Shown here one piece after another: positions 29,831-60,489 of a stretch of DNA of 64,000 nucleotides; within the stretch, counting starts at the first letter, position 1, and each line of letters opens with the position of its first letter. Under the pieces are notes generated by a model. That model ran no database searches, was not told the origin of the DNA, and worked only from the letters and a program-made list of their open reading frames with translations. A program made the translations under genes and the position numbers. This DNA comes from Bugula neritina. Lineage: Eukaryota > Animalia > Bryozoa. Location: contig OZ037769.1 of NCBI GenBank assembly GCA_964035545.1, positions 6,987,929 to 7,051,928 of the forward strand. Direction: 5' to 3'.

Positions 29831-31093
29831 GAATGAATATATTACATTCCTGCAATGGTGTACTACATAGAAAATTTGGCATAAACATAAACTAAAACTG
29901 TAAAGCTACATGTATGGTCTAACTAGGGAGAGATGGTAAAATTTATGAACTAGTGGATCTTATTCAAAATTAATGTGTTATTTTGTTACAAATATTTGAA
30001 TGAAAAAAATTGGTGATCTAGTTTTCGCGATTCCAATATCGGTTGGTTTCAAAAAACATACTTGCACGATATGTAATATAATTATTTGCAGCAATATGCA
30101 TTAGCCCTAGAACCTAGATTGTTCATGGCACTCTCTTCTTTCTGAAATTCGAAAGATGTTGCCTAGGACGCTTTCTGGACCAAAGACGGAGGGAAAAGTG
30201 ATTGAAATAACGATTTAGCACGATCAACCTCAATATGATAGTGATAGTTGTCAGCCTGATATTTTAACCACAAAAACCTTATGGTGAGTCTATGATAATA
30301 TTTTAGAGAAAATTTTACTTTAATGAATAACATTAAGTTTAACTGTTCAATTTTTACTTCAAAACTCAGATTGAGTTTGTTAATGTTACAGAACAGAAAT
30401 AAGTTAAACTTAAACTTAAAGTTGCTATATTATTAATATTAATAATATATTCGTATAAATATATAGTAATTATTTTATTTTTAATAGTATTAAGGTATAA
30501 TATTGACAATAAAATTATTAATATGGAGTATTACACATTTTTTGGGTTATAATAATGTTGATTTTGATTTTATATGATCACATGACGATGTTTTGTAAGT
30601 GTTATAAATCTAAGTGTTGGGACATAAGATAAAGATTCAGATTGAAAATAAGCCTATCAGTATCATTATCATTAGCGATAGGTGATAAACTTTACGCTTT
30701 AATGATCATTTGTGGATCACTCTTAACATAAAACTAGATGTAACAATGATGCTTTAGTTAATTTTTGCTTACCATTGTGATTGTCATTCTGATTATAGTG
30801 ATTATAGTCAATGTTATGTTTCAAATTTAAGCTAATTTTGTCATTTTAAAGCTTGTTATAGAAAATTTTTGTATTGAGTCAGTTGTTACAGTTGATATTT
30901 AAATTTAAAAGTACAATTTAATTTTGTTTCAATTATAGGTTTCTTAAATTTCAATTTTTATTTACAATTTGTTAAATTTGAGCATTTATTTGAGTATACA
31001 TACATAGTAATTTGATATTTTTCTATATCTTTTAGGTTCAACTAAAAGATGCTAAGGTATTGAGTATGATGTGCTAGATATGACATCTTAAGT

Positions 31094-34000
31094 ATGGCGC
31101 TAGGTCTTCTTACCCTTACAGCTATTGCCTTATTCTGTGGACTTGTTTCTGGTGCTTTATTTACCAATATTAGCATTGTGCCTGGAAAGTATTTCCAATA
31201 CACTCTATTGGCCAATGAAAAGGTTAGTCAACTATGAGGTCCTATTTTTTGTGAGGTATTTTTTTATAGCATTTTGAGTGTACTCAAATTTTTGCACTTT
31301 AAAGTTTTTTGGAAAGTTTATTTCATTTTTAATTAGAAAAGTTACTAAATTATCAGTTCTCATGAAAACTATACACACCATTTGATATTTTTTTTCATTC
31401 TATTCTTGGTTTGTTAGTAAAACATTGTTGTACAAATCCGTAAACAAGAAATTAGTTATGTAATCAGAGAATTTTTGCACTTGTCCCAAACAATCTCAGT
31501 CTTTATTTGGTTTTTATAATTAACTCAGTTGCCTGTTGAATTATGTTCACTTTACTAAAAATAAAAAGATGCTAACGAAAAAGCCATTGTAACTGATATA
31601 AGTTTTACCTTTGATAATATTATGGTTTGTTTTGTTTTATCTTCTTAGCTATTACACTGCAACATAGTTTGGCAAAAATATTATCGTGGCAACCATCAGT
31701 AGATGGCTAAACCTATTTCACTTTTTTTGCTTTTATTGAAGCACTGAATATTATGTGTTGAGTATTTGTCAAACTGAGTTAATAAATTGCTTAAATTTTG
31801 CTGTAGCAAAAAAATGGCGATATTTCAACTGCATTCATTGGTTGAATGGTTTAACTTTAGGCTAATATTTTTGATTGTAGCTTGCAGACGTTTCTAGTGA
31901 TGTTCAAGATCCGTGGATATATTATGATGGAGAGTGTCACTGTGTTTCTGGTGTACCACTACAAGGACAAACCTCTCTGGTTAGTAGAATCAGTTACTTC
32001 AGTTCTGAAAATGTTTGACCAATGTATTTAGCTTGATACTCAAGTATGTTTTATCGGAGTGTGTTGAATGCATGGGTGTCTGGTGTGTTTTTGGTGTGTG
32101 TCTGCTAATGTCTGCTTCGACTACATCAAGGATGGGGCCATTATTGGAGCAAAGTTTGCTCAAATTTTCTCTACAGTAGAAGTATTTTAGTCCTACATGA
32201 GGATTATGATTATAGTATACCCTTTGTAAAAAGTAAAGCTGGTTACTTTAGCAGTTTATACAAATTTGCATATATAACAAAAAGTTTAGTTTTTGAAATA
32301 TTGTGAATGTACCTTTTTCTACTGTTCAAATTTTATTACTCAATAGCTGTTTGCTTGTAAACACAAGCCTTAATGAGCCATGAAATGTAAAGTACTATTT
32401 ATTAGCTTCTATAGGAAATGCTGAATGACGTGTGTTTAAGTTTGGCACCTTCTAACTGATGGCCATTGTATTTACTGCTTTCATAAACTCAAAGAATTTT
32501 TTATTCAAACCGTTGAATGAAATTGCATCAAAATATTTGCTTAGTGGTTTATACAGTTCTAGACTTCCTTTGAGCTAGTTTCTTTGACATGAGATATGCA
32601 GCTGAGGCCTGTATAAATATTAGGCATAGCTTGATAAATTAGGTGCTGCAACAGCGAATTTTCAATAGCAGAAGTTATTGAATGTTTTATGAGTTTTGTT
32701 TTTCCCAGTTTCCTGTTGCTGCACCCACCTCTGCTTAACACATGCCTTTACACTTCACACTAAAGATTTTGTTGTGTGTTTTAGATTAGTATTTTAGACA
32801 CAACATGCCACCTCTGCCCTCCTCATAGACTGGAGATTGCTGTGTCACAGGCTAACAATAGCCTGAGGAATCACGGGCTTACAGCCATGTACACGAAGTG
32901 CAGGGAGTTGGACAACCCAGTGTCTGTCATACTAAGATTTGGTTTACGAAAGGCAGGGCTGGACAACAAGGCCAGGGTGAGTGGTTAATCTATATAGATA
33001 GACTGCTATTGAACTTCTTGTAAACTGTGCAAATTACTACACTTTTCTGAGAAAGGGAATTCTTTTTCTCCCTCCCCCTCTCTCACTCCCCTCTCTCTAC
33101 ACTCTCCCCTCTTTCTACATTCCCCCTCTCTACACTCCCCCCTTTTTCTCTCTATCTATCTATCTATCTATCTATCTCTTTACAAAATGGCTGTAAAGGT
33201 CTAAAAGTATTATGCAGACTAAGCACTCACTACCAAACAGTGAACTCATTTCGGCTTTTCTTTTTATACTATTACAAAATCATTATAATATGTATTGCGA
33301 GTGATATCTCCACTGAAGATTGAACCCTCTTGATGCCAACTCAGTTGTCTGTATAGCCTGAACTTCTACTTGTTGAACTGTCATGAGCAGCAGCTTGCGC
33401 ATTGTTCATTCTACTGTGTGTAGCTTCATATCTGACTTCTGACCTGTAATAACTGAGGGAATTCTAGTTCCCCTCAGTACAGCATATCTATATAATACAG
33501 TTTTATCCGAGTTGATAAGGACCTCTTCACATAATCATTTTTGCACATAATGTATAAACAAGTAAAATAGAGAAGCAGCAAAATGAAATGATCATTCCGA
33601 TATAATGTAACAGAAGAATTGGAACTTATAATTTGAAAAAATATTTGTGTGCAATAAAGTCTTTGTATCATGTACAGTAAAATATGTTTGGGTGAAAGCA
33701 AGTCATTTCAACTGAGATATGAGTTGTCTCACCAATGCCTATTACTGTTCCCTCTGATTGGCTAGCTGCCTGTCCCAATATGGTTATTGCATCAAAATGA
33801 GCCTTGGCCTTCTGTGATGTAACTGTTCACAAAAATACATGAATCAAAATATGTTAGTACACTCTTTATGATTATTTAATTTTGTTACTAATTTTCTGCA
33901 ACTACTATATAATAAGTTGTTTGTTATATGCAATATGCCTAGAGATAGTAATTATTATAAATCCCCGTTTAGCTGAAGCAGTGGAGAAATTGTAGCACCG

Positions 34001-37000
34001 TACAATCCTCAACTTTTCTTTAACAAATCTTGGTTTGAGGCGTTGGTCGAAATTATCATGATGACAACTTATTTCGCCACATTTCAAATCTAGAACACAG
34101 GCTTTACTCAATTTCTCCATTACTGCATCTACCTCTTGGTGATGAAGTGTTCTAACTTGTTGAAAATAGCAATAGCTTTGTTTGGTTGGTTTGCACTATA
34201 CGAAGTGGTTCATTATTTGTCATGTAGTACAGCAGGTTTAAGTTAAGATTTTCTAAAACTTGGGTTCAAAGCGAACCGACATTTAAACTATCTCAATGCA
34301 GTAATCACAATGGGAAACATGTGCGTATTCACATTCATTATAGTGTTTGCAATTTAACTTTATAACAATCTAAACTTTCTGGTTCTAAAATAAATTTGTG
34401 TGTGTGTAAAACTTAACCAAATATAATATAAACATCATTCCTAGTTGTTGCAATGCACTTAGATTGTATCTATTGGTAAATTAGCACTTCTGTTTTGGAT
34501 TGCTTTAGGTTCTCCTTCTGAATGATTTGTCAAAGGAACTGAACGTTGACGTTAGCCTTTTGACTATGAGCAAAAGAGTGTCTTATATGAATATTTTACA
34601 AGCATGGTCAGGGGAGGTAACTACTGAAGTTGATGACAGCATAGACGTTTTCTGGGACTTATCATGTCAAAATGTAAGTCAATATTTTTTGAACCTATTA
34701 GGTACCTTAATGTATATATTAGAAACACTTTTGTTGTAGGCAATTTACTTTCCTAGATATGAATCAGAAGATGTTTGATTTTTGTCAGTCCGATTTCTTT
34801 TAAGTGCTTTTAGGAACCTGCAACAAGCACTATGGTAATGTTTCAATATGAGTCTTAGATCTTGTCTAATGAAGATAATAAAACATTTTTAGGACATTAA
34901 AACAAGCAAATGAAATACTAGATTGATCCAAAATGGTGCAATGTATTTTCTAGCTATATTAAAATGTTTTCCAAGAAATCTTTGTATTGTTTAGGAAATA
35001 AAAACAAATATCTACAAATACAATAATTTAAAAATATTTTCTGCCTAATGTAGTACTAATAAAATTTCTTTTGCGGTACAAGATTTTGTGCAGCATGATT
35101 TAATGTGCTGTAGTCACAAAACAGCATTAAAGTTAGTAAAAGAATGGTTCTGATGTGTGTTGAAGTACTCTTCAAGTTGATGAACTCCATCCACCTCCTT
35201 GAGTTTTCTGTAGATGGGTTAATTATAGTCTACAATACAGTAAATTATGATGATAGAACTTTATAAAAACAATAGATTTTCTTTACGGCCAGTACATCAT
35301 ATCATATACTGAAATAATCAATTATTTAGTAATTTGAATTAAAAAGTATTCAAATTGGTACATAATGTAATTACTTATTTATTTATGTTCTATTTCTTTA
35401 CCAATTTGTAATAAAACCTAAATTCATATGGAGGGTTTTCAAGCAGACTAAAGACTGCACCTTCTACCATGCTGGCAACATATAGTTTTTGAGTTTTTTG
35501 TCTAAAGTAAAGATGAATTACGACTGCCGATTCCCCTCTTGACATTGCCAGTGGCCATGCAGGGCTACGAACTCGGCTAGCATTCTAATCTGTGGACTAC
35601 TGCCGCTTCCAATGTTAATATTGTTGAATAATAGAATAGTTATTTATTAGCTTTGCTGATTGCAGCTAAGTATACTAACATGTAGTTGTCTGTCCCCATC
35701 CACCAGGAGCTGTAGTGGTTGGCTGGTAATGACCAGAACCTCCTTTAGGACCTCTATCTCCTTTAGGACCTGTATTTCCTTTGGGTCCACGTGGGCCCTG
35801 CTTACCTCTTTTTCCCCATGCACCTGAACATAGATCATAAATTATTCTAGTGTAGGACTAAAGACAACCATATAGTGTTAGCTTTATCAAATTCTTAATT
35901 TGCTTTTAGTGAAATTTCTAGACTCTTTCTTGCTGTGCTTAAAATGACTCAGAAAAATGAGCCAAGCACTTGATTTTTACATTATCGTCATAATATCTGG
36001 TTATACTATGCAGCATATAACAGACCAATTTCTAAAAGATTTTATGCCTGCAGTAGTTTAAGTGATTAAAAAGAGATAATCATTTATATTCTAAAATTAA
36101 GCTATTTCTGGAAACACACCTGTAGGACCTGTAAAGCCAATCGTTCCTGTTGGCCCTGTTGGGCCTGTGTTTCCAATACGTCCCTTTTCTCCTTTTGATC
36201 CGCTATTTCCCTTTGAACCTGTGTCACCTTTGATTCCTTTTTCAGTGCTTCCCTTGTCACCTGCAAAACATTGAGAAATAATTTTATTTTGCAAGATTCC
36301 ATTTGAAGTTATCAAAAATTTATTTTCTAGTAATAACTATTTGAAGTGCATTTATAATAAGTTTTGAAGTAAATATAAACATTATAATATAAATAATTTC
36401 TTATAATAAATGAATTTTATAATGAATATGATTATGAGATATTATGTATTGGTTATAAGTACACTGTGTAAGTGTTAACTTGTTAGCATAATTTTCTTAC
36501 CAGTATCTCCTTTATGTCCTTTGCTGCCTTTAGAGCCAGTACCACCAATGTTGCCTTTATCTCCTTTTGGTGCATCTTCCCCTCCAATACCTTTATTACC
36601 CTTGAGCCCCTGGCCACCCTTAGTACCTCGAAATCCTTTTTCGCCTTCTCCACCCTTGAATCCTTTTTCTCCTGTTGTACCTTTTGCTCCGTCAACACCT
36701 TTATGACCATCAACCCCTTTAGAGCCAGATTCACCCTTTGTGCCCATGATTCCTTTGAGGCCTTTAAAACCCTTATCACCTTGGGCACCTTTTGGTCCAA
36801 TAATACCCTTTTCTCCCATATCACCTTTACTTCCTTTGGTACCAAATTCTCCTTTAGCTCCCTTTTCACCTTGGTTGCCGTTGATTCCTTTATTACCATT
36901 CTGACCTTTGTGACCTTTTTCTCCTTTATTTCCGCCATCTCCTTTAATACCTCCAATTCCTTTATTTCCTTCAATACCTTTGTCACCTTTAACTCCTTTG

Positions 37001-40000
37001 TTGCCATTCTCTCCTTTGACTCCCTTATCACCTCCTTCTCCTTTGACGCCTTTAAATCCACTACTTCCTTTCTTCCCTTCACTTCCTTTAACTCCCTGCT
37101 CACCTTTTTGGCCAGTAGTGCCTTTGTCTCCTTTGTTACCTGCATTTCCTTTGACTCCCTTATTTCCAAATTCACCTTTAACTCCTTTCTCACCTTCACT
37201 CCCTTTGAAACCTTGGTCACCAAATTCACCTTTGTTACCTTTTGCTCCTTTAAGGCCTTCTTCACCTTTTTGGCCAGTATTACCCTCTTCTCCTTTGTCA
37301 CCAACCTCACCTTTAGTCCCTTTATTACCAGCAATGCCTTTGGCTCCTTTGCTACCTTGCATGCCTTTAATACCTTTACTGCCGGTTTCTCCTTTGTTGC
37401 CCATTGTTCCTTTGAGTCCCTTTTCACCTTTAAATCCACCCATGCCTTTATTTCCTTTAGCACCATTCTCACCTTTTCCCCCTTTAATCCCCACTTCACC
37501 TTTGGTTCCCTTGTCACCTTGATTGCCTTTAATACCTTTGTTACCAGTTTCTCCTTTATGCCCTTGGTTTCCTTTAACTCCCTTGTCACCTTGAAGACCA
37601 TTTTCTCCCTTCTCTCCTTTTTGACCTTCAATACCTTTAGCTCCTTTATCACCAACTTCACCTTTATCTCCCACATTACCTTCATCTCCTTTGACTCCTT
37701 TAAATCCACTACTTCCTTTATTCCCTTCACTTCCTTTAACTCCCTGTTCACCTTTTTGGCCAGTAGTGCCTTTGTCCCCTTTGTGACCAGTATCTCCTTT
37801 AACTCCCCTATTTCCAATTTCACCTTTGACTCCTTTCTCACCTTCACTCCCTTTATTACCTTTTTCACCAAATTCACCCTTGGTCCCTTTGGTACCTTTA
37901 AAGCCCGTTTCACCTTTAAACCCAATGGAGCCTTTATTTCCTTCACCACCTTTATTTCCTTTAGTACCTGTATTTCCTGTTTCACCTTTTTGTCCTTTGC
38001 TACCTTGCATGCCGTTGGTGCCTTTACTGCCAGTTTCACCTTTGTCACCCATCGTTCCTTTGCTACCCTTTTCACCTTTAAAGCCACCCATTCCCTTATT
38101 ACCATTTTCCCCTTTTTCTCCTTTAAAGCCCATTTCACCTTTTTGTCCGTCAAGACCTTTATTGCCTTGTTCACCTTTATTGCCCTTTTGTCCATTGGTA
38201 CCTTTACTACCTTCAATTCCTTTTTCTCCATCACTTCCTTTACTTCCCTTTCCACCTTTAACACCATCCATCCCAGTGTTTCCTTTATTGCCTTTGACCC
38301 CTTCAATACCTTGTTCACCTTTATCACCTTCAACTCCTTTAAAACCTTGAATACCTTTGGACCCTTTCTCACCAGTATCTCCTTTATGCCCTTTACTTCC
38401 TTTAAGTCCTTTTTCACCATTTGAACCTTTACTTCCTTGTTCTCCCTTTTGACCTTTTTCTGCTTTAACACCTTTCTCTCCGGTGTCACCTTTAACTCCT
38501 TTAGCACCCTGTTTACCCATAAAACCTTTGTTACCATTTTCTCCTTTAAATCCCATGTTTCCTTTAATGCCTGTTTCACCTTTATTTCCGTTGTCACCTT
38601 TTTGTCCTTTCTGGCCTGTCTCACCCTTAAACCCTTTATTGCCAATTTCTCCTTTAATTCCTTTATCTCCTTGATTTCCTTTATTCCCATTTTCACCAAT
38701 TTCACCTTTGTGCCCCTTTTCTCCTTTATCGCCTTTCTGGCCTTTGAAACCTTCAAATCCTTTGCTGCCTTTGAGACCCGTTTCACCTTTGCCTCCTTTA
38801 TTTCCACTCTCACCTTTGATGCCTTTATTACCATCATCACCTGTAAAGCCTTTAAAGCCAATTTCTCCTTTATATCCTTGGGTTCCTTTAAATCCTGTCT
38901 CTCCTTTCTGGCCATCACTGCCCTTTTCTCCCTTATCACCCTTTTCTCCATTGATTCCTTTATTGCCATTTGTTCCTTTAATTCCTTTATCTCCTTGACT
39001 GCCTTTAATTCCTTTGTTTCCTTTATTACCTTCCTGTCCTTTGACTCCCTTATTACCTGCTTCACCTTTGAGTCCATTCTCACCTTGTCCACCCTTGTGT
39101 CCTTTTTCACCCTTGGCACCTGTGTCACCTTTTTTCCCCATGACTCCTTTGTTGCCGTTGCTTCCCTTAGCCCCTTTGTTGCCATCATCTCCCTTATTAC
39201 CAACCATTCCTTTATTTCCTTTTTCTCCCTTAGACCCATCTTCACCTTTACTACCAAACATTCCTTTAACGCCTTTAGTTCCTTGCTCTCCTTTTGTTCC
39301 TTTGTTACCACCATCACCCTTATTGCCTTTGTTCCCATCTTCTCCTTTAAATCCATTTTCTCCTTTACCACCTTTGAGTCCTTTTTGCCCTGTTTCTCCT
39401 TTATTTCCTTTGAACCCTTCTTCCCCTTTATTGCCTTTAAACCCTGTATTTCCTTTGAGGCCCTTTTCTCCTTTAATGCCTTTGCTGCCAGAAAATCCTT
39501 TATCTCCTCTCGGACCTTTTTGACCACTTTCTGCTTTGATTCCTTTAAATCCTTGAGTGCCTTTTTCACCTTTGGGCCCAATACTGCCTTTGATTCCTTT
39601 ATCACCCATTTGACCTTTACTACCTTTATTTCCTTGCTCTCCTTTAAATCCTTTTTGTCCATCAGTTCCTTTGGTACCCGTTTCTCCTTTATGACCTTTA
39701 GTTCCTTTTTCTCCTTCTTCACCTTTTGTGCCTTTCTCCCCATTATTTCCTTTATCACCGTTGATACCTTTATCACCAGCGTGACCCTTGATACCCTTTG
39801 GACCAACAGCTCCATCTTTACCTTTTGCACCACTCTCTCCTTTGTCACCTGCCATCCCTTTGTTTCCTTTTTGACCTGTGACACCCTCATCACCTTTGAA
39901 TCCTTTATCACCAAATTGCCCTTTAATTCCCATGTGACCTTTAATACCTTTAGCTCCCTTTTCACCTTTTTCACCAGTTTTGCCTTTAATGCCTTGATTG

Positions 40001-43000
40001 CCTTTAATCCCTTGCACACCCTTTTGACCAACTTCACCTTTAAGTCCCCTAGCTCCTTTTTCTCCTTTACATCCTTTGAGACCCCTTTCTCCTTTTTCGC
40101 CCACATTCCCTTTATTTCCTAGCATTCCTTTCTGCCCTTTAATACCTTTTATACCTTTCAAACCTGTTGCTCCAGTAGCGCCAACTTCTCCTTTAACACC
40201 TGTGCTTCCAGTAGGACCTAAAATACTTTAAGTTGTTAATTAAATAAAAAGCGCATTTTGTGCATAATATTTTATATAATATTATAATGTGCACTATGTC
40301 CTTTATACTAAAGTTACATACCTGTAAATCCTAGGCCACCTGAAAACATATAAATAAATATATAATATATATATTGCATATATATGAAACATTGAATGCA
40401 TAATGTGCAAGTTGTAAGTGGTGTGTATAAATTGTAAATGCGATAACTCATTATCAACTGCCATCATGCAGATATAATACATAAAATGGTTGCAAACTAG
40501 TGATTACTAATAAACAATCATAAAAAGAAAGTCATTTTTATTCTAAATTTATTATTGTATTTACTAGTTGAGATATCAACTCAAGGGTATTATCCAAAAT
40601 AAAGATAATTAAATTGAAGCTATTACTAATTGCATATATGGTTGCTACTAATTTTTATTGGGTTAGCTTCCATGTTGGTGAAATTGTTTTTCCTTATATG
40701 GATAACCTGGATGTCTTCTGAAAGTCATTATGTAATAGTTTTTAGTATAAATACATGTAACATGAGTTTAAAAATGGAGATAGCTAAGTCTAACGAACCA
40801 ATGTTTCAAAAACTCAACACTGCCTAAGTGGTGACTTCATTTATTTTGAGCTCTGTGCAGTTCTGATTCGCTTATTTTCTATTAATTACATGCAGCTAGC
40901 ATTTGATTTGATAAGGATTTTTAATATATACACTGGATTAGAGTTATATCAATAACCATGTGTTTAGCTGATGGTCAACAAATTAAGTTAGCCATGCAGT
41001 CTTTCTCTATGTTTGTCTGTTTTTGCTTTATGCTTTTCTTTGACTATTAAATATTTTATACATGCAGGCTTTGAAAATAATTTTGGCTATTATAGGGTTT
41101 GAACTTTACTTCCCAAATTGATTGGCAGTATATCAAACCCTATACTCGAAACATACACACTTACAAATTTCCATATATTAATTTATTCATGTGCATCATC
41201 TTTCTTTCTTGAGGCTGAACCTACTATTAGCTTTCTACCTAAAATTAGGTAAAAATTTATTTTTATACATTAGCCTAAAACTTTTCATCCTGATTCAATA
41301 ATTTAATTAAATGTAACCCCAACCTTTAGGTCCAGTAGCTCCGATTTCTCCTTTGACTCCCCATCCAGCGGGTCCTCTAAGACCTCGTACTCCCCGAGGT
41401 CCACGATCACCTTTTGGCCCAGGAGGGCCTGGCGGACCAGCAGGTCCTGGTTTACAGTAGCAAGGGTTCTCAGTGGTCTTTGCAGTTCCTCCCCAACCAG
41501 TAGGAGGGGTTGTATACGTCTCCGCTCTTTTCTCTCTTCTTAGCTGAAATAGGAATAAACCAAGTTAATTGTTTTAGTTTTAATTTTCTTTCAAAGTAAT
41601 TTTATTTTGCTTGGAAGTGTTACAAATCTCACCTCAACGCCAGTAAATGCCTTGGCTATTTGTTGGTTCAGGTTGTTTGTCTTATTCTCGACATGACCTA
41701 CTCTGTTGATTATCTCCACTTTCTGAGCCTCTGATATTTCAAGTTTGACTTGCAACTCATAGACTGTCTTTAAAAGTTGGACATAAAACACCCCAAGAGT
41801 GGCCACTGCTCCCAGGACGAACAGACATAAAGTAAATTTTAGTATGGCAGTAGTGTTCTTGCTTTTCCCTGGCTTGAGGCTTGGTTCTACAAACCCTTTC
41901 TCCATGTTGTCTGTTGAAACCTAAAGCATAAGTTGGTTAGCTGTATACAGTGTTTTCTCTCTCTTCAAAATTCTGCAAGACCTTAGAGTTTAGTTCCATG
42001 TGACCTTCTGATCTATTTACTGCAGCTGACTGCCATTTTGAAAAGTTTTAATTTTCTGAACAGAAAGGACGTAGTTTTATTTATAATTATTAGGCTCAAT
42101 ATTATCTTACTATCGTGGTAGGTTACAGTTTCCTGTTGTAACACACATTACATTAAATATGCTAGCAGTTGTTTGAGTGTATTGAAGCGTAATATAGTCA
42201 TTTTATATTGCAATGCTGTATTCTATGTCCAACTTCAATATGTATTCTGATAAGAAGTGAACTGGGTTTACTCTGTTATTTGAAAAAGTCAAGGCGGTTG
42301 GAGATAATCAACAGAAACAGCACACCATTGATTATTAGAATAAACTCCATTAAACCCTAAATACTACAATAACAAACTAATAACAAAAGTTAAAATTTTA
42401 ATTTCCTAATTTTGTGAACTTATAATTTTTATTGACATATTTTTATAAGATCACCGTAAGAATAAAATAAGAAATTATTAATCCTAGGTTTTAAACTGTA
42501 GCATAGAAAATTAATAAGTGTGCCAGAATGTCACATTACACAAGTACTACAACATACCTGTTTGCTGGTGTCAGTGCAGAGTGTCTAACTTCCAGCTGCC
42601 TGTCACACTAAATATACAGTGGTGGATTTTTATAATGTTTTATAGGTCCATTATTTCAATTTGTCCTCGAATGCATTGCTGGTGTTTATAGCCTACCAAT
42701 GTGAAATTATCACGAAGGAAAGTTTGGTTATAGACAGCTTATGGTAGTTATTACACATTAAACATGATAATGTTGTTCAGCGTGCTATTAATAGTTTATT
42801 AGCAGCCTATGTTATTATATTATATTCATAGTTTGAGATGAATCAATTTTTTCAAGTCAAGATGCATATAGTTTAGAAATATGTTTTCAATTTAGTTTTG
42901 TTGACTACGTATCAATGTTTGACATTTAATCAAATGCAAACCAAGAGATTTGATTGACTTGGTTTTCTTGTTTGTCTGTGGAGATAAATATATCAAATTT

Positions 43001-49000: not shown

Positions 49001-52000
49001 TCAGCTTTCCCTTACAGATGACAATAGAAAGGTTGGTGCTTGTTCTAGAGCTGTGTGTACATGTGTAATAAGCAGTTTCCACTAATATTTTATCTTTATA
49101 ACTAATTTAGTTTTGGTGTAGTGTAAATTATTATTGCATTTGTGCAGGGAACAATCCGGTTTTACTGTACATTTCCATGTGCATTTTATGTTACTTCTAT
49201 GTCACTACGTTTCCATTGTTGGAATGTCTACTCAATCAGATCAGTTGAAAGTCACACATTCCTATATATAGTAGATTAGACTTCTCAAAGAATGACAACT
49301 CTAAGTAAACAGGCCTTTAACTCTGCTGTACATTTGGACAAAAATAGCCAATATTAACTTATTTTGGAGCTATTACTTTGCTGCAAATGTTAAAGATTTC
49401 CATTAATGCTATCAATAGGTTATACCTTGGAACTTTTTAGCTGTTGTATATGAGCCTATTTAGGATACTGTATAACACAACTCACTTACTCAATATAAGT
49501 CTGCATAACTTCAATTAGTTGATGTTACTCTAACATTACCAGCACCTGTGACACTGTTAATTGGGAGATTTGACTGTCTAGCGTTACAAAAATAGAGTTG
49601 AACGACAGACTAACACGCTACTTGTGGAGATGGCGCTACATTAGCACCAGCTGCATCACCAATTGCTTTATATCCTCTATCGTTTATTATCCTGTCTGAG
49701 TAATATATTATCTGAGTTCCAGTTAATACTTTACTGCTGATGTTCTCTGCTGAGTCAATAACTATGAGTTGAAGTTGAAACCATTGTTGGTAAACATCTT
49801 TAAGTTAGATGGCTTTTTAGATGACAAATTGCAAACTGTTAATCTTGTTTTATTGTAGGCTATTCATTCAGTGCCGTGGCTACAGTTCAATACTAAATCT
49901 CAGACTCTGCAAGGGTTAGCAGTGCCTCCCTTCTACACCCGAGAGTCTGGTGACAGAGTAAACCTCACTCTACGGGCCACAGACAGCACGGGGCAGACAG
50001 CATCTAGTCTTCTCACAATAGTAATATCATCGGATGACCTGTTCAAAATATCTCACGTCTTTGAAATGAATATTCGAACTGACTTTGTGTTGTTCACATC
50101 TGGTATTGAGCATGTCTCGTGGTGGGCTGGTAATATCACTGAATTCTTCAATAACTCTATAGACTCAATTCGAGTCCTAGAAGTTCACAACGCGTCGAAG
50201 ACATCAGTGATAGTCAAATGGTCTAATAACACCATTAATAATATCATACCTCCATATACGTGTCCTTTAGCTGATATCTTGCATGGGCTAAACCAGATGA
50301 GATCTGAGCTGTTCCAATCTGATCTCAATCAATTCATAATACAAGATGTGACTCTGGAGCTCCGTGGTGTGTGTCATGACTTCACCACGGCCCTTCCTTT
50401 GGCTACCTCTACACCTGAACAGATTACAACAGACTCTGCTAGCACCACAACACCTGTATCTATAGTCAGTAGGTTGTCAACTTACTTGAATGTATTTTAG
50501 TCAATGGGATGCTGCCGGTCATTCTTGACTTGTGTTGAATATTTAGTGTTGAGTGCAGAACCAGTGAAATGTGGTGCTCCAAATACAGCTTACAGCGAAC
50601 TGTGTGTATGTGTAATTATTTTTGTTTTACAGCCACTACAGCTAATCCACAGCCAATGGTAACTTCTACACTGGATGTACTTACTGTAGATTCTGGTATT
50701 TACTTTGAATATCAGATTCCAGAAAATACATTCTTAGATCTACAAGATGGAAACACAAGAAATCTCACTCTATCCTTACTAGACACTAACAGACAGGTGA
50801 ATATGTACATACGCCTACTGTTATACATACATGTATAAGTCAAATACTAAACCCATTACTGGGTGCTATTAATTTCACTGGAAGACAGCTGTAATATTAT
50901 ATTATATTAAATAATTCTGTTTACAGCCACTACCTCATGACTCATGGGTACAGTTAGACAGAGTTGAGCAGAAAGTATATGGACTGACAGTGTCACCATT
51001 CTGGTCTGGTATTTCCACTCAGTATAACTACACTGTGAGAGCATCGGATAGTCAGGGTAACCAGGTGCACACAACTCTAGTAGTCAGCATCTCTACCATC
51101 AATTCAGTGAGAGTGTCCCATTCCTTCAGTATGAGAATTCTCACAGACTATAGCCTGTTTACCAGTGAACTATCTCATGCTATATGGTGGGTGGGTAACG
51201 TGACCGCCCACTTCAATGAAAGTCTTAACGATATCACCACACTGAACATTGTGGACAGTGAATCTCCAGGTTTAGTGATATCCTGGTCTAACAACACTAT
51301 AAATAGTATAAATCCACCATACACGTGTCCTCTCTCCCTTATATACTCCACCTATTCTGAGTTAACTAGTGAGTCATTCCAATCAACTCTGAGTCAGTTT
51401 ATCATTGAGTCAGTCGAACTGAAACTTCAAGGTATCTGTGAAGGTTTTGATACGACTACTTCACTAATGACTACACCAACCACTACAGTCACCACACCAA
51501 CCACTACAGTCACAACGTCAACAACCACTTCAACTACAACTACACTGCCTCCCACCACAAGTATGATTTTTATCTTTTCATTATAAAATTATTATACCAA
51601 ACATTTTTATATTCTATTTTCTGTGAAATTTAAAGCATAGTGTATATCAGTTTGTTTTGTTGATTTGTTTTACAGCCACTACAGCTAATCCACAGCCAAT
51701 GGTAACTTCTACACTGGATGTACTTAGTGTAGATTCTGGTATTTACTTTGAATATCTGATACCAGAAAATACATTCTTAGATCTACAAGATGGAAACACA
51801 AGAAATCTCACTCTATCCTTACTAGACAGTAACAAACAGGTGTGTATTACTATATACTAGAGTATAGACACTAACAAACAGGTGTGTATTACTATATACT
51901 AGAGTATAGACACTAACAAACAGGTGTGTATTACTATATACTAGAGTATAGACACTACCAAACAGGTGTGTATTACTATATACTAGAGTATAGACACTAA

Positions 52001-55000
52001 CAAGCAGGTGTTTATTACTATATACTAGTATAGACACTACCAAACAGGTGTGTGTTACTATACTGGAGTATATTATAAACGTAGAAAATTCAAGCTCTTG
52101 GAAAAGGTTTGAATTTATTTCGATAAAAATTGAAAACGCGTTTTCAGACTCAAAGAGTGTGCACGATAAATGGTAATCAGCCAAATAAATCAAATCTGCA
52201 CCAATTTTTTCCGCACGCTTTAGCTGTTCAACATTTGGTCCACGTGAAATCATCTGAAATCCGCACACAACAACTCAGTCCGGGAAATCTTTCTAATATG
52301 ACCGGCACTAAACCAAGAGCATATTAGTAGCTACAGTGCAAAACTTTATGTGATGTGGACCAAATCTACAATTACAAGTATTATGCACAGTGTATAAGTA
52401 TAGTGAAGTAATTTTCTTCATACTCATATTACAGCAGAATAAGTTGCAGTGTTTTTTGTAGTTTACACCAACATGTTAAGAATTCCTTCAAAGATATTAA
52501 TAGCTTGAAGTAGTTGAGTATTTTGTAGCTAGAAATTAATATTTCAAGTATGTTATTCTGAAATTCTTAATGATGCTACAAATAATTTCATAACTGTTTT
52601 TATCAACTCTTGTAAGCAATGCTGGCAACAATCCTTCATGGTTTTAGAAATCAGCGTGTAGCCTTCTACCTGTGCTTCCCACCAAGAGTCATGAATATGA
52701 TATAGGAACTAATGCAACATAGTGATTGCACTTGTATATTTTATGTGTTTTACTCTGCAGTTTATAAAAGCTAATTTTAGTCTCGTAATATTTTGAATTT
52801 ATAAATCAATGGTGGTTCAATACCAGAAACATCTTCAAATTTTATTGTTACATTCAGGTATTCCTGCATGAATTAAGTTTGACTCACTACTTGAACAGTT
52901 GGTAAATAGATTAGTCTGTTTAGATGTGATACTTTTCATTTCAGCCACTACCTCATGACTCATGGGTACAGTTAGACAGAGTTGAGCAGAAAGTATATGG
53001 ACTGACAGTGTCACCATTCTGGTCTGGTATTTCCACTCAGTATAACTACACCGTGAGAGCATCGGATAGTCAGGGTAACCAGGTGCACACAACTCTAATT
53101 GTCAGCATCTCTACCATCAATTTAGTGAGAGTGTCCCATTCCTTCAGCATGAGAATTCTCACAGATTATAGCCTGTTTACCAGTGAACTATCTCATGCTA
53201 TATGGTGGGTGGGTAACGTGACCACCCACTTCAATGAAAGTCTTAACGATATCACCACACTGAACATTGTGAACAGTGAATCTCCAGGTTTGGTGATTTC
53301 CTGGTCTAACAACACTATAAACAGTATAAATCCACCATACACGTGTCCTCTCTCCCTTATATACTCCACTTATTCTGAGTTAACTAGTGAGTCATTCCAA
53401 TCAACTCTGAGTCAGTTTATCATTGAGTCAGTCGAACTGAAACTTCAAGGTATTTGTGAAGGTTTTGATACAACTACTTCACTAATAACTACACCAACCA
53501 CTACAGTCACCACACCAACCACTACAGTCACCACACCAACCACTACAGTGACAACATCAACAACCACTTCAACTACAACTACACTGCCTCCCACCTCAAG
53601 TACGATTTTTATTTTTTCTTTATAAAATTATTATACCAAACATTTTTATATTTTACTTTCTGTGAAATTTAAAGCATAGTGTATATCAATTTGTTTTATT
53701 GATTTGTTTTACAGCCACTACAGCTAATCCACAGCCAATGGTAGCTTCTACACTGGATGTACTTACTGTAGATTCTGGTATTTACTTTGAATATCAGATT
53801 CCAGAAAATACATTCTTAGATCTACAAGATGGAAACACAAGAAATCTCACTTTATCCTTACTAGACAGTAACAAACAGGTGTGTATTACTATATACTAGA
53901 ATATAGACACTACCAAACAGGTGAGTATTACTATATACTAGAATATAGACACTACCAAACAGGTGTGTATTACTATATGCTAGAGTGTAGACACTACCAA
54001 ACAGGTGAGTATTACTATATACTAGACTGCAGTGGTTCCCAACCTTTTTCATAAATGTTGACTATTAATCCCCCCCCTTTCAAATAGCAAAAATATTTTA
54101 TGACTTACGGAATGAGAATATATGATACAATGCAATATATTTTGTTCTATCATATTTGCATATAATATAATTATCATAATAGTAATATTATCATTATTTT
54201 TATGTTATCAAACGCAGAGCAGTTCAATTATTAATGTTATGGCTTCATTTAATACTTTTGTGCTAGCTTGCTTAAGCCTGGCTCCGTGTTTGACCAGGCC
54301 CATCTTAAGTCACTCTGCAGGTTAAGGCAGTTTCTTTTCTCTTTGAGATGGGAATCCTACCTCACACGGATAGGTGGTGCTGGACGGCACCAAAACTCTG
54401 CTTTGTCAGTTATGTGCGGGAAGAGTTTGCTTGTTGAAACCCACAATTATTTGGCACACTGATGTTAAATTTTTTTAAACTCAAACCCCAAACCCTCCAC
54501 ATCAAGCCCCCAACTTTTGAACCCTAAACCCCCACCCCCAAACTCCAGAACTCCAAGTGCAAACCCAAAATCCTTCCCCCAAACCCCTCTTTCAAACTCC
54601 AAATCCCAAACCCCGATATTGAAAACATATGCCATTTTTACTTACTTTTCCATTTGTGCCATTATTACCTGTGCCATTTCTACTGGACACTACCCACAAT
54701 ACATCAACTGGAGAAAATGTCAAATTACCCTTCATTGCTGAATTGTGAACCAATTCAATAAAATCCTCCTGTAACTCCTCTGAAAACTTTTCAACAAAGA
54801 GTTGCAATGGATCACACGTTAAGTTAAGAATCTAGCTCTTTCTTTTTGGGAGGTAGCTCAAAGAAATACTCTTGAAACTCCATTAAAAGTTCAGAGAGAT
54901 GCCTAGAAGTTTTTTTGAAAAATGATCTGGAACAGGTGGTGTCTGGTAAAAATGGCACAGGTAATAATGGCACAAATGGAAAATTAAGTAAAATGGGACG

Positions 55001-58000
55001 TTTTCAATATTAACATTGTAGATTTGAGTTAGGGGTTAGACGTTCAGAATGAGGTGTTTGGAGGTTTGGGTTTGGGAAAATTTAACACCAGTGTGCGATT
55101 TTTACTGGTGCCATTTTTACCTAAAATCGGAACAGGTTCTTTTTCTATCAAAGTTCATTGAGTGTAGGGAAAGACACCATGCTTTTGATAGAGATGTCAC
55201 CACTTTAGTGTAACCTTAAAAAAATTGCCGCTGCTATGAAAGGCAATGATATGATTGCACTCCTGCATTTTTAGGTTCAGATTATTCAGTGTAGCAAATA
55301 TATTCACTAGGTATGTAGTATACAGCTCATAGAAATTGACGTGCATGGCTGCTAAAAGTTGACGTGTTGGTTTTTGCATATTTTTTACTTCCATTCGAAG
55401 TAACACAGAGAACAGTTAGGGTAGAGTAATTAATAAACACACATTCATGTAGAAGTAAACTGAGATTGCAGAATATGGTTTAGTTAAACAGATGAACTAA
55501 GATGAAGATTTATAGACATGCATATACATGTAACTTGCAAGAGCTCAAAAACCGTCAACAAATTGCGTGAATTTTTCAAAATCCAAATTCCCCCTTTAAA
55601 TGTCCAAATTCCCCCCTAGGGGGGAATTCCCCCCAGGTTGGGAACCAGTGTGCTAGAGTATAGACACTACCAAACAAGTACACGTGTATTAGCTTAGGGC
55701 CAAATGTGACAGATTTTCCTCATGCGGGTTCAAATGGATGAAACTCTCTTGCGGGAATGACCTACTACACACAGTGCATAGTCTGCGGGTGCAGAAATTT
55801 ATTAGCTAATGATAATCACGTTGAAATTTACTGCTTGCCTACATGCGTTTGTTTTTATTGTTATGTCATATGCTCTGCAGCGAGAAGATGACTTTAGACA
55901 TTATAAGCGCGGAAAATGCAAACTATTGAAAAAAGTTTTAATTCGTTTAGCTAAAAATTAAAAGTTTGTATTCAAACTCGTAAAGTGTGCTTGATTATAA
56001 ATGGTAGTCAGCCAATTAGATCAAATCTGCTCCTATTTTCCGCACTGGCTGTTCAACAGTTTGCTCACATGAAACCATCTTGAAATCTGCACACACCAGC
56101 TCATTGCAGGAAATCTTTCTAATAGGACCTCACACTAAACCAAGAGCATATTAGTAGCTACGTTACAAAACTTTTTGTGTTGTGGAACAAATATGCAATT
56201 ATATTATGTATTGAGCATAGTGTATAGGTATAGTGAAGTAATTCTTTATATACTTATATTACAGAAGAACAGGTTTGCAGTGTTTCTTGTAGTTTCCTTC
56301 AACAATAATAATAGCTTGAAGTAGTCTTTTGTAGCTAGAAATTAATGTTATTTCAAGTATATTATTTTGAAATGCCTAATAATAACACTAGAAATAATTT
56401 GGTTGCTGCTTTCATCAACTCTTGTAAGTAATGCTGGCAAATTCACAGCTCTAAAGTTTGATAATGCCCATTTCAAACTTGATAATTCATAAATAATTGT
56501 TTTTAAAGTTTTTAAAGTAATCAATTTGGAAAATTTGAATCTGCAAGCGTTACATTATTGTAAAGTTCCAAATTATACCTCCCGTTCAATTACTTCACTT
56601 TTGGGCATGTGTCATTTTGCGAATTTGAACTATCCTTCCTAACTTTAGAAATCAGCGTGTACTACTTGCGCTTCCTAACAAAAGTAATGAATTCGATATA
56701 AGAACTAATGCAACATAGTGATTGCACTTGCATATTTTATGTGTTTTACTCTTCAGTTTATATAAGCGAATTTTGGTCTCGTAACATTTTGAATTTAAAT
56801 CAACGGTGGTTCAACGCAAGAAACATCTGCAAATTTTACTAGCATTACTTACATTGAGGTATTGCTGTATATATAAAATAGGTTTAACTCACTACTTGAG
56901 CAGCTGGTGGATAGATTAGTCTGTTTAGATGTGATACTTTTCATTGCAGCCACTACCTCATGACTCATGGGTACAGTTAGACAGAGTTGAGCAGAAAGTA
57001 TATGGACTGACAGTGTCACCATTCTGGTCTGGTATTTCCACTCAGTATAACTACACTGTGAGAGCATCGGATAGTCAGGGTAACCAGGTGCACACAACTC
57101 TAGTAGTCAGCATCTCTACCATCAATTTAGTGAGAGTGTCCCATTCCTTCAGTATGAGAATTCTCACAGACTATAGCCTGTTTACCAGTGAACTATCTCA
57201 TGCTATATGGTGGGTGGGTAACGTGACCGCCCACTTCAATCAAAGTCTTAACCATATCACCACACTGAACATTGTGGAGGGTGAATCTCCAGGTTTAGTG
57301 ATATCCTGGTCTAACAACACTATTAACAGTATAAATCCACCATACACATGTCCTCTCTCCCTCATATACTCCACCTATTCTGAGTTAACTAGTGAGTCAT
57401 TCCAATCAACTCTGAGTCAGTTTATCATTGAGTCAGTCGAACTGAAACTTCAAGGTATTTGTGAAGGTTTTGATACGACTACTTCACTAATAACTACACC
57501 AACCACTACAGTCACCACACCAACCACTACAGTCACAACGTCAACAACCACTTCAACTACAACTACACTGCCTCCCACCACAAGTACGATTTTTATCTTT
57601 TCATTATAAAATTTTTGTACCAAACAATTTTTATATTCTACTTTCTGTGAAATTTAAAGCATAGTGTTTATCAGTTTGTTTTGTTGATATGTTTTACAGC
57701 CACTACAGCTAATCCACAGCCAATGGTAACTTCTACACTGGATGTACTTACTGTAGATTCTGGTATTTACTTTGAATATCAGATACCAGAAAATACATTC
57801 TTAGATCTACAAGATGGAAACACAAGAAATCTCACTTTATCCTTACTAGACAGTAACAAACAGGTATGTATTACTATATACTAGAGTATAGACACTAACA
57901 AACAGGTATGTATTACTATATACTAGAGTATATACACTAACAAACAGGTGTGTTACTATATACTAAAGTATGGTGCGCGGTAAAAGTGGCATATTAAAAG

Positions 58001-60489
58001 TGGCACAGGTAGTTGTGGCAAGTAATAATGGCACAAATGGAAAAGTAAGTAGAAATGGAAAGTTTTCAATATTGGGGGTTTAGCCAAATTTGACATCAAT
58101 GTGCCATTTTACCTGATTTTCCATTTTTGCCATTATTACCTGTACCATTTTTTCCTAAAATCACTAGATTCTAGAATATACATACATACATAGAACATAC
58201 AGGTGTATATTACTATGAAGATGTTAGTAATAATAATTTCTATTTCAGGAAGTTGCGATCAATTCGTGGGTTCAGATTGATAGACCCACACAAACTCTGT
58301 TTGGGTTAGCAGTGGAGCCATTCTGGCAGGGTCAGGGGTCAACTAGCTTTTTCATACTCGCTGCTGATGCCGATGGAAATTCTGTAGCCACGGAGCTCGT
58401 CATAAAGGTAGCGTCCACTAACACTCTCCGCGTGTCGCACACATTCAATATGAAGATTCTCACTGACTACACTCTGTTCACCAGCGAGCTGGAGCACACC
58501 ATTTGGTGGTTGGGGAACGTGACTCGGTACTTTAACTCAGATCTGAGCTCAATTACTCTGACATCTCTCTCTGAGGGTTCCGTGGTAATCAGCTGGTCTA
58601 ACAATTCCATCAATCAAATAGATCCTCCATACATCTGCCCTGGATCTCAAATATACCAACAGTACAGAATTGTTAATGGCGGGGGCTTAGTCAACAGCCT
58701 TCCTCAATATTTGATACCCTCAATTGATCTAAAGCTACAAGGAATATGCAATGACTATACCACAACTACAGAAGTTCCTACTACCACTTCTACCATTTCC
58801 ACTACATCTACACCTACAACTACTACAGTGTCAACCACTACAACTACACCCACTACCACAAGTAAGTACATGACAACGTTTTCGTCTGTAAGTCAAACCC
58901 GCCATTTAGGAGTAAAACAGGAAGTCTCAGTAAGTGTTTCCTGTCTAGAATGTTCTCTGCTTGCTTGTAGCTACTCAACCCCAGCACCCTGTCGTACTGA
59001 ATACCCTGCCAGAACTTTCTGTACCGGCTGGTATCTTCACTGAGTTTATTATACCAGAAAGCACTTTCTATGACTATCAAGATGGTCCAACTCGCTCTCT
59101 CAATCTGGAACTACTCAATGATGAAGGACAGGTAAAATGTCTCACCAAACACCCTTGTGGTGCAAGACTAAGTCAATGTATCAATCTGTTTATCTGATTT
59201 CTTAGGTGGTAAACTGGCTTTATTGATGAAGTATATATATATTGCAAAGTGAAAATTGTGGTATATAAAAACTATTAGTTAATCAACTTTAACCTTGTAA
59301 TGTAATTTTGATATGATGCATTTTACCATATTTCTACTGTGCTATATTTGGTATGAATCCTGACTAGTTTGAAGGCTATGCACTGTGCATCATACCTTGG
59401 CTCAATAACCTAGCACCTCCAATGTGCAGTATGTATTTTATCTTAATCTATCCAACTATAATTTATAAGTGTATTATATTCTTGCAGGTAGTATCTCCAT
59501 CAAACTGGTTACAGCTCAGTTCTCTCAGGCAGTCAGTATCCGGTGTAGCCTCATATCCATACTTTGACGGGGCTTCTACCAACCAGAACTATTACATTCG
59601 AGCCTCGGACAATGAAGGAAACCACATAAACGCCTCCCTCAATGTTATCATAGATACTGAGAATCTGGCTAGTGTCTCTCATGTGTTTCTCATGACCATC
59701 ACCACAGACTTGTATCTGTTTACTCTAGATAGCAGTCACATTGTATGGTGGGCAGGAAATGTTACCAAGTTTTTTAACTCTGATATCTCCGACATTACAG
59801 TTCTCAATGTGACTGCGCCTTTAGTGACTGTTATGTGGAGTAATAATTCTATCCAATCAGCTTACACGTGTCCAATAGCATCTATCAGAGACCTCTACCA
59901 AATAGTATCCAGCGATCAGTTCATCCAATCACTGCCTCAGTTTTTTATCACATCAATTTCTCTCAAACTGGTGGGTATTTGCTCTGAGTTCAGTGTTGAA
60001 CCGACGGTTGAAACTACTACCACCCCTACTCCCTTTACAAACAGTACTACGAGCACTCTCCCTGCTTCAACCACACTTACTACCACAGTTGTTGCGACAA
60101 AGTTACCTCAGCAAACGCCTGATCCATTTTTAGCTCAGAAAATAGCAATACCAGCTGGAATAATTTTTGTAATACTTCTAGTTATAGTGATATTATTAGC
60201 CGTGCTGAGAAATCGGCGTAAATACCGCGGCAGGTCCCGCTTTGATGCAGACGGTCCTCTGTATGCGCCGAGGTCGCCTAAGCTAATGCCCGAAGAGACC
60301 GATACTACTGAGGACACTAACGGTCAGTTCAATGACCTCTTTGAAAGTGAAGTGATTGACTCACCAAATCAGGAATTCCCAAATGTTGAAAGACCAGCTA
60401 GCAAGGCTGCTCCCCCTGTTTACACGCTACCACCTCCTTTTCCTCACAACAAAACTCGCCAGTCAGATCAGGCTTTTGATTTGCCTTGA
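31094..60489 (+). CDS. Giant dystroglycan-like type I membrane mucin (~3716 aa, 17 coding exons) with six CADG+SEA-like modules
   Basis: Exons 31094-31222, 31881-31979, 32785-32976, 34509-34673, 43177-48607, 48862-49031, 49859-50468, 50633-50796, 50927-51560, 51676-51839, 52945-53599, 53715-53878, 56950-57583, 57700-57863, 58249-58861, 58971-59131, 59488-60489; phases are consistent. Signal peptide MALGLLTLTAIALFCGLVSG. DAG1-like N-domain: WIYYD..VSGVP; C..LDNPVSVIL; VFWDLSCQN resembles human LSWKLGCSLN; GHPVISWFLK..KRRLRR resembles GYPVVGWHIANKK..KRVRR. Then mucin, repeated G.YF.Y.IPENTF.D.QDG.TR.L.L / W.Q...Q.L.G (CADG) and V.WSNN...CP (SEA-like), TM IAIPAGIIFVILLVIVILLAVL, basic stop-transfer, APPVYTLPPPF. 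Confidence 0.88.
33900..34200 (-). mobile_element. Possible hAT transposase C-terminal relic
   Basis: Minus-strand ORF contains LRIVRCYNFSTASAKRGF, resembling the hAT dimerisation motif S(T/S)AxxERxFS; no TIRs identified. Confidence 0.35.
35675..41905 (-). CDS. Nested antisense type II transmembrane collagen (MACIT/collagen XIII-XXIII-XXV-like N-terminus), ~1505 aa, Lys-rich
   Basis: Exons (-): 41905-41633, 41543-41324, 40339-40322 (18 nt), 40217-36501 (3717 nt = 413 Gly-X-Y triplets), 36260-36120, 35823-35675. Short cytoplasmic N-terminus, TM FTLCLFVLGAVATLGVFYV, coiled coil, furin site RREKR, CYCKPGPAGPPG. The last exon boundary is uncertain: a gttagt donor overlaps the TAG, and a possible extra exon lies at ~35207-35172 (KTQGGGWSSST*). 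Confidence 0.9.
42558..42634 (-). promoter_or_regulatory. Putative TATA box and short non-coding first exon of the nested collagen
   Basis: Minus-strand TATAAAAA 42634-42627, CAG|GTATGT donor at 42558/42557, and an acceptor at 41922-41921 just upstream of ATG 41905. Confidence 0.5.
43370..47190 (+). repeat. Coding 54-bp (18-aa) mucin tandem repeat, ~70 units, with a 540-bp higher-order duplication
   Basis: Unit ~TT(N/D)(G/S)TVSINSTATTTS(P/T)(V/A). Lines 43441-43920 are identical to 43981-44460. Confidence 0.95.
51822..52065 (+). repeat. 42-bp tandem repeat duplicating exon end plus donor (also at 53861-54026/55651-55678 and 57846-57970)
   Basis: Unit GTGTGTATTACTATATACTAGAGTATAGACACTAACAAACAG; the junction CAG|GT is repeated. 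Confidence 0.92.
54030..55650 (-). mobile_element. Internally deleted hAT (Charlie/Buster-type) DNA transposon
   Basis: 15-bp TIRs CAGTGGTTCCCAACC / GGTTGGGAACCAGTG (1 mismatch). Minus-strand transposase relics YLVNIFATLNNLNLKMQ, EELQEDFIEL and RVLVPSSTTYPCEVGF (hAT dimerisation motif). Inserted in the 42-bp donor repeat at a tactagag-like site. Confidence 0.85.
57972..58162. mobile_element. Short MITE family copy (others at ~54939-55128 and inverted ~54450-54690)
   Basis: All three copies share GGTAAAA(A/G)TGGCA…GTAATAATGGCACAAATGGAAAA; the two forward copies end in TGCCATTTT…CCTAAAATC. Confidence 0.7.

Follow-up and report, generated by a model that had tools for sequence, protein, structure and literature searches.

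The window analyzed here, a stretch of 64,000 nucleotides from Bugula neritina, carries the gene of a dystroglycan-family member that is not the orthologue of canonical DAG1. Taken as a whole, the gene is likely to encode a dystroglycan of the DG2 lineage, a type I membrane protein of 3716 aa, DG2 being the label that we coined for a group of long-mucin dystroglycans. The 17 coding exons (31094-60489, plus strand) all have GT..AG borders and matching phases, and join to an open frame of 11151 nt with zero internal stops. The splice sites were read off the sequence, and the joined model was assembled in scripts and compared with fetched proteins; all coordinates given in an earlier sequence-only reading of this DNA were borne out. 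The domain order is signal peptide, short IG1, S6, furin site, mucin, six IG2+SEA modules, one transmembrane (TM) helix, and a PPxY tail.

The first four coding exons were assigned from the sequence, an RNA contig, and profile alignment. The first exon (31036-31222) holds the 5' untranslated region (31036-31093), the ATG at 31094, the signal peptide, seen by eye as a hydrophobic N-terminal stretch of ~20 aa, and the start of IG1. Exon 2 (31881-31979) encodes IG1 with its W.Y...GVP motif, exon 3 (32785-32976) the end of the shortened IG1, a linker, and the start of S6 with the first conserved Cys, and exon 4 (34509-34673) the S6 core, with W-x-x-x-C at its end. Intron 1 occupies the IG1 position that is universal among dystroglycans (PMC5216574); the IG1 introns of Lineus and Apostichopus align with it. 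Exon 5 (43177-48607), assigned from sequence and profile alignment, encodes the end of S6, the furin-type site KRRLRR (43303-43320), and the mucin stalk.

The sequence-only reading had claimed a signal peptide and alpha-dystroglycan-like N-terminal domains. A Pfam search exon by exon gave no match for exons 1 to 4, including a_DG1_N2, as the single exons are too short and divergent. When joined, however, amino acids 1 to 260 gave a collinear alignment, covering IG1, S6, and the furin site, with two N-terminal profiles built from fetched dystroglycans, scoring 45 and 40 bits (maximum of 200 shuffles, 5.4 bits; either half alone, 14-18 bits). This N terminus is very divergent, and its IG1 appears shortened. 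KRRLRR, at amino acids 238-243, aligns with the furin site of other dystroglycans. The Thr-Pro-Thr LARGE site that follows the furin site is not kept; the sequence there reads AVLSTALPTTLSTP, with threonines present. This site is only weakly conserved (PMC4582122). LARGE1 requires a prodomain contiguous with the mucin (PMC12514197), and the retention of IG1-S6 in the giant dystroglycan is consistent with that requirement. Two loci of the GT49 (LARGE/B4GAT1) family were found in the genome.

The mucin, expected at ~1770 aa, spans amino acids ~244 to 2010 (~1765 aa; 41% Thr, 18% Ser, and 143 N-x-S/T sequons) and is built largely of a 54-bp tandem array at 43372-47180, in which ~70 copies encode 18-aa Thr/Ser units, some of 21 aa. 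Homologue searches with residues 1 to 75 and 1340 to 1810 of the mucin exon were blank, which is uninformative given the query length limits. Scanning metagenomes with the first part of exon 5 yielded a single match, to a prokaryotic contig (L033), which was rejected as a chance hit.

Profile search recovered six tandem modules, described earlier as CADG+SEA, and the same number is present in another, independent B. neritina assembly. Each is a unit of one short and one long exon bounded by phase-1 introns: module 1 at 48862-50468 (exons 48862-49031 and 49859-50468), modules 2 to 4 at 50633-57583 (50633-50796/50927-51560, 51676-51839/52945-53599, and 53715-53878/56950-57583), module 5 at 57700-58861 (57700-57863 and 58249-58861), and module 6 at 58971-60489 (58971-59131 and 59488-60489), the last running on through the TM helix (~60142-60207) and the tail to the stop codon at 60487-60489. 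Ser/Thr linkers of 45-60 aa separate the IG2+SEA blocks. The Cys pair is kept in all six modules. The maturation site, Gly-Ser, occurs only in the penultimate module, module 5 (58576-58581), being absent from modules 1 to 4 and from the membrane-proximal module 6. An orthologue at ~55% identity likewise has Gly-Ser in the penultimate rather than the last module, whereas three more distant members of the DG2 clade keep it in the last. A 42-bp intronic tandem repeat that contains a copy of the splice donor lies at 51823-52062, 53862-54026, and 57847-57971, after the short exons of modules 3, 4, and 5, and creates decoy donors.

The fold of the modules is that of beta-dystroglycan. PF05454 matched them at an E value of 1e-4, just short of the cutoff, and a module profile searched against the PDB hit beta-dystroglycan at an E value of 9e-13. 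The predicted fold of the last exon (pLDDT of 90) had beta-dystroglycan 8yt8_O as its top Foldseek match (E value of 7e-10), and a full, spliced module of the orthologue (P0167; 57% identical to module 5; pLDDT of 92) superposed on the same chain with a TM-score of 0.84 and an rmsd of 2.3. The tail contains PPVYTLPPPF (60412-60441), with a PPxY motif just upstream of PPPF, and runs on for 15 aa beyond it. The usual terminal PPPY is changed to PPPF, a Tyr-to-Phe change seen also in nematodes and urochordates (PMC4582122).

Within either genome, modules 2 to 4 are 96.7-98.6% identical in DNA; between the genomes the figure is 95.4-96.9%. Eight sites are genome-specific and none is position-specific; the single-copy modules differ by 5-6% between genomes. 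This pattern points to homogenization of modules 2 to 4 by concerted evolution.

Compared with vertebrate DAG1 (PDB 8yt8, 9c3c, 8uf4, and 1u2c), the Bugula protein has the same order of signal peptide, IG1, S6, furin site, mucin, IG2, SEA, TM helix, and tail, the same module fold (the TM-score of 0.84 being for the orthologous module), the same SEA Cys pair, and the same IG1-intron position. It differs in its length (3716 versus ~895 aa), in its N-sequon-rich mucin (~1765 versus ~170 aa), in having six modules with Gly-Ser only in the penultimate one, in lacking Thr-Pro-Thr after the furin site, in a tail that continues past PPPF, and in its 17 coding exons versus 2. Measured against vertebrate DAG1 alone, as in the sequence-only reading, its novelty was overstated. 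The idea that six modules are unprecedented was rejected, since the dystroglycan of Nematostella vectensis has six tandem IG2_MAT_NU modules (PMC4582122), and proteins with 12 to 22 modules are present in the databases. The mucin of the Nematostella protein is unusually short, its module sequences are distinct, and it has no Gly-Ser site, whereas the Bugula modules are two-exon phase-1 units, three of them near-identical, behind a mucin ten times the vertebrate length. Two modules have also been described in arthropods, Saccoglossus, and Trichoplax, and a Ser/Thr region of ~500 aa in a sponge (Adams and Brancaccio, PMC4582122). The giant DAG1-repeat membrane proteins (the Hydractinia XP_057297854 cluster and relatives) also place tandem IG2+SEA blocks before one TM helix, but they lack a long mucin, have other tails, and fall on a separate tree branch. 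Eight of them (P0008, P0015, P0017, P0021, P0026, P0027, P0035, and P0067) are 3600-6200 aa long with 12-22 modules, a Hydractinia relative having ~22; such 12- to 22-module proteins are absent from both dystroglycan surveys (PMC4582122 and PMC5216574). MUC1-type SEA mucins (see also PMC9564314) resemble the Bugula protein in carrying a tandem-repeat Ser/Thr stalk over a TM helix and a SEA domain that cleaves itself, as that of module 5 would, and differ in that the Bugula SEA is of the dystroglycan type, is paired with a cadherin-like Ig domain, and comes with a dystroglycan prodomain and tail.

The giant protein would work like a hybrid of dystroglycan and a membrane mucin. By extension from vertebrate dystroglycan, the IG1-S6 prodomain would guide Golgi glycosylation of the stalk tip and would then be removed by furin at KRRLRR. 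The mucin, densely O- and N-glycosylated, would stand out as a stiff rod. Mucins extend by 0.2-0.25 nm per residue; the rod would be roughly 0.35-0.45 micrometer long, and the six IG2+SEA blocks with their Ser/Thr linkers would extend its reach. Self-cleavage at the Gly-Ser of module 5 would leave a long alpha chain held noncovalently on a beta chain with one additional module left intact, and the PPxY tail may bind a WW protein such as dystrophin. The product would be a long-reach tether of the glycocalyx or matrix that can be shed at module 5, rather than a close basement-membrane receptor of the usual kind, a part that two canonical paralogues could fill. [quoted passage not shown] Reasoning by analogy, we tend to favor such a long-tether or glycocalyx role.

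Some weight, if clearly less, is due to the view that the protein acts as a normal basement-membrane dystroglycan that binds laminin, its extra length being due to repeats that grew neutrally through unequal crossing-over. A stalk made of a 54-bp array and the homogenized state of modules 2 to 4 speak for this view, and the furin site, the Cys pairs, and a PPxY motif have been kept. It fits less well with the recurrence of long mucins in DG2 proteins of four phyla, with extra modules in other, more distant species of the clade, with the loss of the LARGE Thr-Pro-Thr site, and with the existence of the two canonical paralogues; we regard it as unlikely.

These paralogues came from a search of the 216-Mb genome for a separate canonical DAG1, a check proposed with the sequence-only reading. 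Two other dystroglycan genes were found, at C5:15412098-15428371 and C4:18327172-18337575 (both on the minus strand), and both belong to the canonical clade. They are sister to each other and apparently have two modules each; the C5 gene has a Thr-rich mucin exon of ~570 aa, and both tails close with PPAYPHN and an acidic stretch in place of the usual YVPP.

A profile search of 1.84 billion representatives returned canonical dystroglycans, the giant repeat proteins, and a long-mucin set with extended tails. Named members of this set are from Lineus (XP_064632762, annotated as "mucin-2-like"), Tubulanus (XP_074644461), Owenia (CAH1788430), Capitella (ELU03166), Plakobranchus (GFO15407), Biomphalaria (KAI8745409), Babylonia (XP_076448167), and the sea cucumber Apostichopus (XP_071816842). 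They resemble the giant protein in the long mucin, the tree position, the extended Y-x-L-PPP[YF] tail (Babylonia excepted), and a phase-1 intron (Lineus and Apostichopus), and differ from it in having no more than two modules, the last of which usually carries Gly-Ser, and in their well-kept IG1 and S6 and few introns. The gene model of the Capitella DG2 protein (CAPTEDRAFT_198354) is not the one, CapteG183589, that represents the dystroglycan of that species in PMC5216574. For the Apostichopus DG2 gene (P0111/P0184/P0185), isoforms of 1955, 1825, and 541 aa are annotated, the shortest without the prodomain and most of the mucin.

We consider it quite probable, from sequence comparison, that the giant gene belongs to DG2 as a second, noncanonical dystroglycan lineage. 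In a 587-column tree of the N-terminal region, last module, and tail, with no rows left out, the window protein grouped with seven long-mucin proteins (98/98), while the C4 and C5 proteins of Bugula fell inside the canonical clade (99/99). The same split of the window protein plus DG2 from the canonical proteins had an SH-aLRT of 98 under the LG+C10 site-mixture model in a tree of 24 rows, from which 18 canonical or cnidarian-type rows had been dropped (for three rows, the cnidarian-type label was inferred from their 6-7 modules). A module-only tree (70 rows, 242 columns) also recovered the canonical clade (99/97) with the window protein outside it and DG2 as an unresolved bush. Besides falling outside the canonical DAG1 clade, the giant protein has a tail without the YVPP end and a long mucin. 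The mucins of six full-length DG2 proteins measure 660-1255 aa versus at most ~400 aa in canonical proteins, the C5 protein with its ~570 aa being the exception. Gene structure gave a similar picture. A phase-1 intron lies just before IG2 in the window gene and in Lineus and Apostichopus, the two DG2 genes checked, whereas the C4 and C5 genes of Bugula have phase-0 introns before IG2, plus an IG2 intron ~19 codons earlier; since the mucin/IG2 border is of low complexity, it is the phase that was compared and not the exact position. The two Lineus modules are phase-1-bounded exons, as in the window. In chordates, molluscs, and annelids, the IG1 intron is the sole intron of the canonical genes (PMC5216574).

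The alternative is that the giant gene arose within bryozoans as a fast-evolving duplicate of canonical dystroglycan, and that long-branch effects and convergence drew it to the long-mucin proteins. Its end branch is indeed long (1.97), and in AU tests a clade uniting the three Bugula genes was not rejected (P values of 0.066 and 0.20). A PP-x-[YF]-PHN tail is common to the three Bugula proteins, the long mucin exon of the C5 gene could be read in the same way, and the match set had been ranked by a profile of the window protein's own lineage. Nevertheless, the free tree was better than one with the three-Bugula-gene clade by 13-23 log-likelihood units, and the split held under the site-mixture model. 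The intron positions and phases differ from those of the C4 and C5 genes and match Lineus and Apostichopus, and the canonical N-terminal profile gave the C4 and C5 proteins 163-166 bits versus 40 for the window protein. We therefore think a bryozoan-only origin rather improbable. The sequence-only reading had called the protein a lineage-specific dystroglycan-family paralogue. It is a family paralogue, the C4 and C5 genes being present besides, and its size and module number are specific to its lineage; its origin probably is not, as it is linked to long-mucin dystroglycans of several phyla by the trees, the motif in the tail, the length of the mucin, and the phase of the intron. The 54-bp repeat stalk, the six modules with modules 2 to 4 homogenized, and the keeping of Gly-Ser only in module 5 are bryozoan-specific additions to DG2.

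According to the surveys (PMC4582122 and PMC5216574), most species have one dystroglycan, duplicates occur only in teleosts and lamprey, and molluscs and annelids have short mucins. An old second lineage with mucins of 700-1800 aa would, if true, change this picture. Our view, held with some confidence, is that bilaterians ancestrally had two dystroglycans and that the long-mucin one, which databases conceal behind names such as "mucin-2-like," persists in bryozoans, nemerteans, annelids, gastropods, and echinoderms as a sheddable tether of glycocalyx scale, of which the Bugula protein would be the most extended form so far, with its cleavage site moved to the penultimate module. Six modules and a nested collagen are ordinary taken alone; the interest lies in the likely old second lineage. 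Its members would also offer natural variants for asking whether the prodomain has matriglycan added to stalks that lack Thr-Pro-Thr, what difference the length of the stalk makes, and what a SEA cleavage site does at a distance from the membrane. We found no paper on a second long-mucin or invertebrate dystroglycan lineage or on a bryozoan dystroglycan in the literature covered, from which subscription journals were mostly absent.

The locus is, with high confidence, one spliced gene across the collagen-bearing intron 4 (34674-43176; 8503 nt), a phase-0 intron within S6 whose joint WDLSCQN/TDFVSEM falls where it had been placed earlier. The joint of 34673 to 43177 is derived from S6 homology and from a fork in the RNA contigs. 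RNA-seq contigs were compared over 30700-35200 of the window. The runs are labeled RNA by guess in their records, and the contigs are spliced and so cannot be genomic. A 727-nt contig from run X1, ~94% identical and from another genotype, skips introns 1, 2, and 3 exactly as modeled, intron 3 being confirmed by a second run; its 83 further upstream letters are probably a noncoding first exon. The X1 contig ends exactly at the donor 34673, and a second contig starts at 34644, overlaps it by 30 letters, and enters intron 4. In our reading of the contig graph, a break of this kind at 34673 requires another continuation, so that part of the transcripts would go from 34673 to a site beyond 30700-35200, the graph itself not giving the destination. 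The S6 alignment is collinear over the joint, and exon 5 encodes the last S6 helix and strand and KRRLRR, so the joint completes a domain. Two short segments of intron 3 (33731-33824 and 34065-34136) match many RNA contigs with unrelated flanks and are probably fragments of a multicopy repeat; the second, of high depth, was considered as a tRNA and rejected by ARAGORN and Rfam.

It could be argued that exons 1 to 4 and the mucin/module part are separate transcripts, namely, a short N-terminal product stopping 24 codons into intron 4 and an independent mucin gene. One RNA contig does run from exon 4 into the intron, the draft annotation divides the locus, and the 34673-43177 joint rests on inference. 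However, the contig fork demands a second successor at 34673, and the mucin exon opens with the missing S6 end and furin site but lacks its own signal peptide. In other phyla, DG2 proteins run from S6 to mucin in one chain. The contig in the intron was found as well in run X3, where exons 1 to 4 are missing, and it lies downstream of the collagen stop; it is thus probably the collagen 3' untranslated region. Two separate transcripts are accordingly very improbable. The division of the locus in GCA_010799875.2 into a 1774-aa gene and another whose 365-aa product (KAF6029106.1) comes from the last exon is the kind of split that the sequence-only reading had expected of automated annotation, and the single-gene model corrects it in Bugula, a model fouling animal. 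The exons are ~94% identical to that assembly, and the last-exon protein shares a 90% cluster with KAF6029106.1. That the module repeats are an assembly artifact or the gene a pseudogene, as the 97-98% identity of modules 2 to 4 and small frameshifts in modules 2 and 3 of the older assembly (which may be assembly errors) might suggest, is hardly credible given six modules with distinct introns in both assemblies, a window frame intact over 11 kb, and the spliced RNA.

The collagen gene reported within intron 4 was confirmed as a minus-strand gene of six exons and 1505 aa at 35675-41905 (exons 41905-41633, 41543-41324, 40339-40322, 40217-36501, 36260-36120, and 35823-35675; PF01391). It encodes an N-terminal TM helix, a coiled-coil-like stretch, an RREKR furin-type site, and an ectodomain of ~450 Lys-rich Gly-X-Y triplets, fitting the type II membrane (MACIT-like) collagens. 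Its 3717-bp exon is Lys-rich and nearly Pro-free, and GWG motifs stand at both ends of the ectodomain. The 3' untranslated region probably reaches antisense down to or into host exon 4. Nothing supports a functional link between host and nested gene, and run X3 has the presumed collagen 3' end without exons 1 to 4.

Several COX1 matches in the assembly (C321, C6, C17, C214, C73, and C4) have differing stop patterns, one being without TGA and possibly bacterial, and the assembly may therefore contain numts and symbiont or contaminant contigs. Elsewhere in the window, an open reading frame at 14896-19151 (plus strand) starts with MGANNS, a possible myristoylation signal, and nearby exons at ~19900-24000 (minus strand) resemble ASH2L. 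A convergent neighbor at 61153-63998 (minus strand) has acidic low-complexity exons without a Pfam match; at its position the other B. neritina assembly calls a 573-aa gene, with a ribosomal L4-domain gene beyond.
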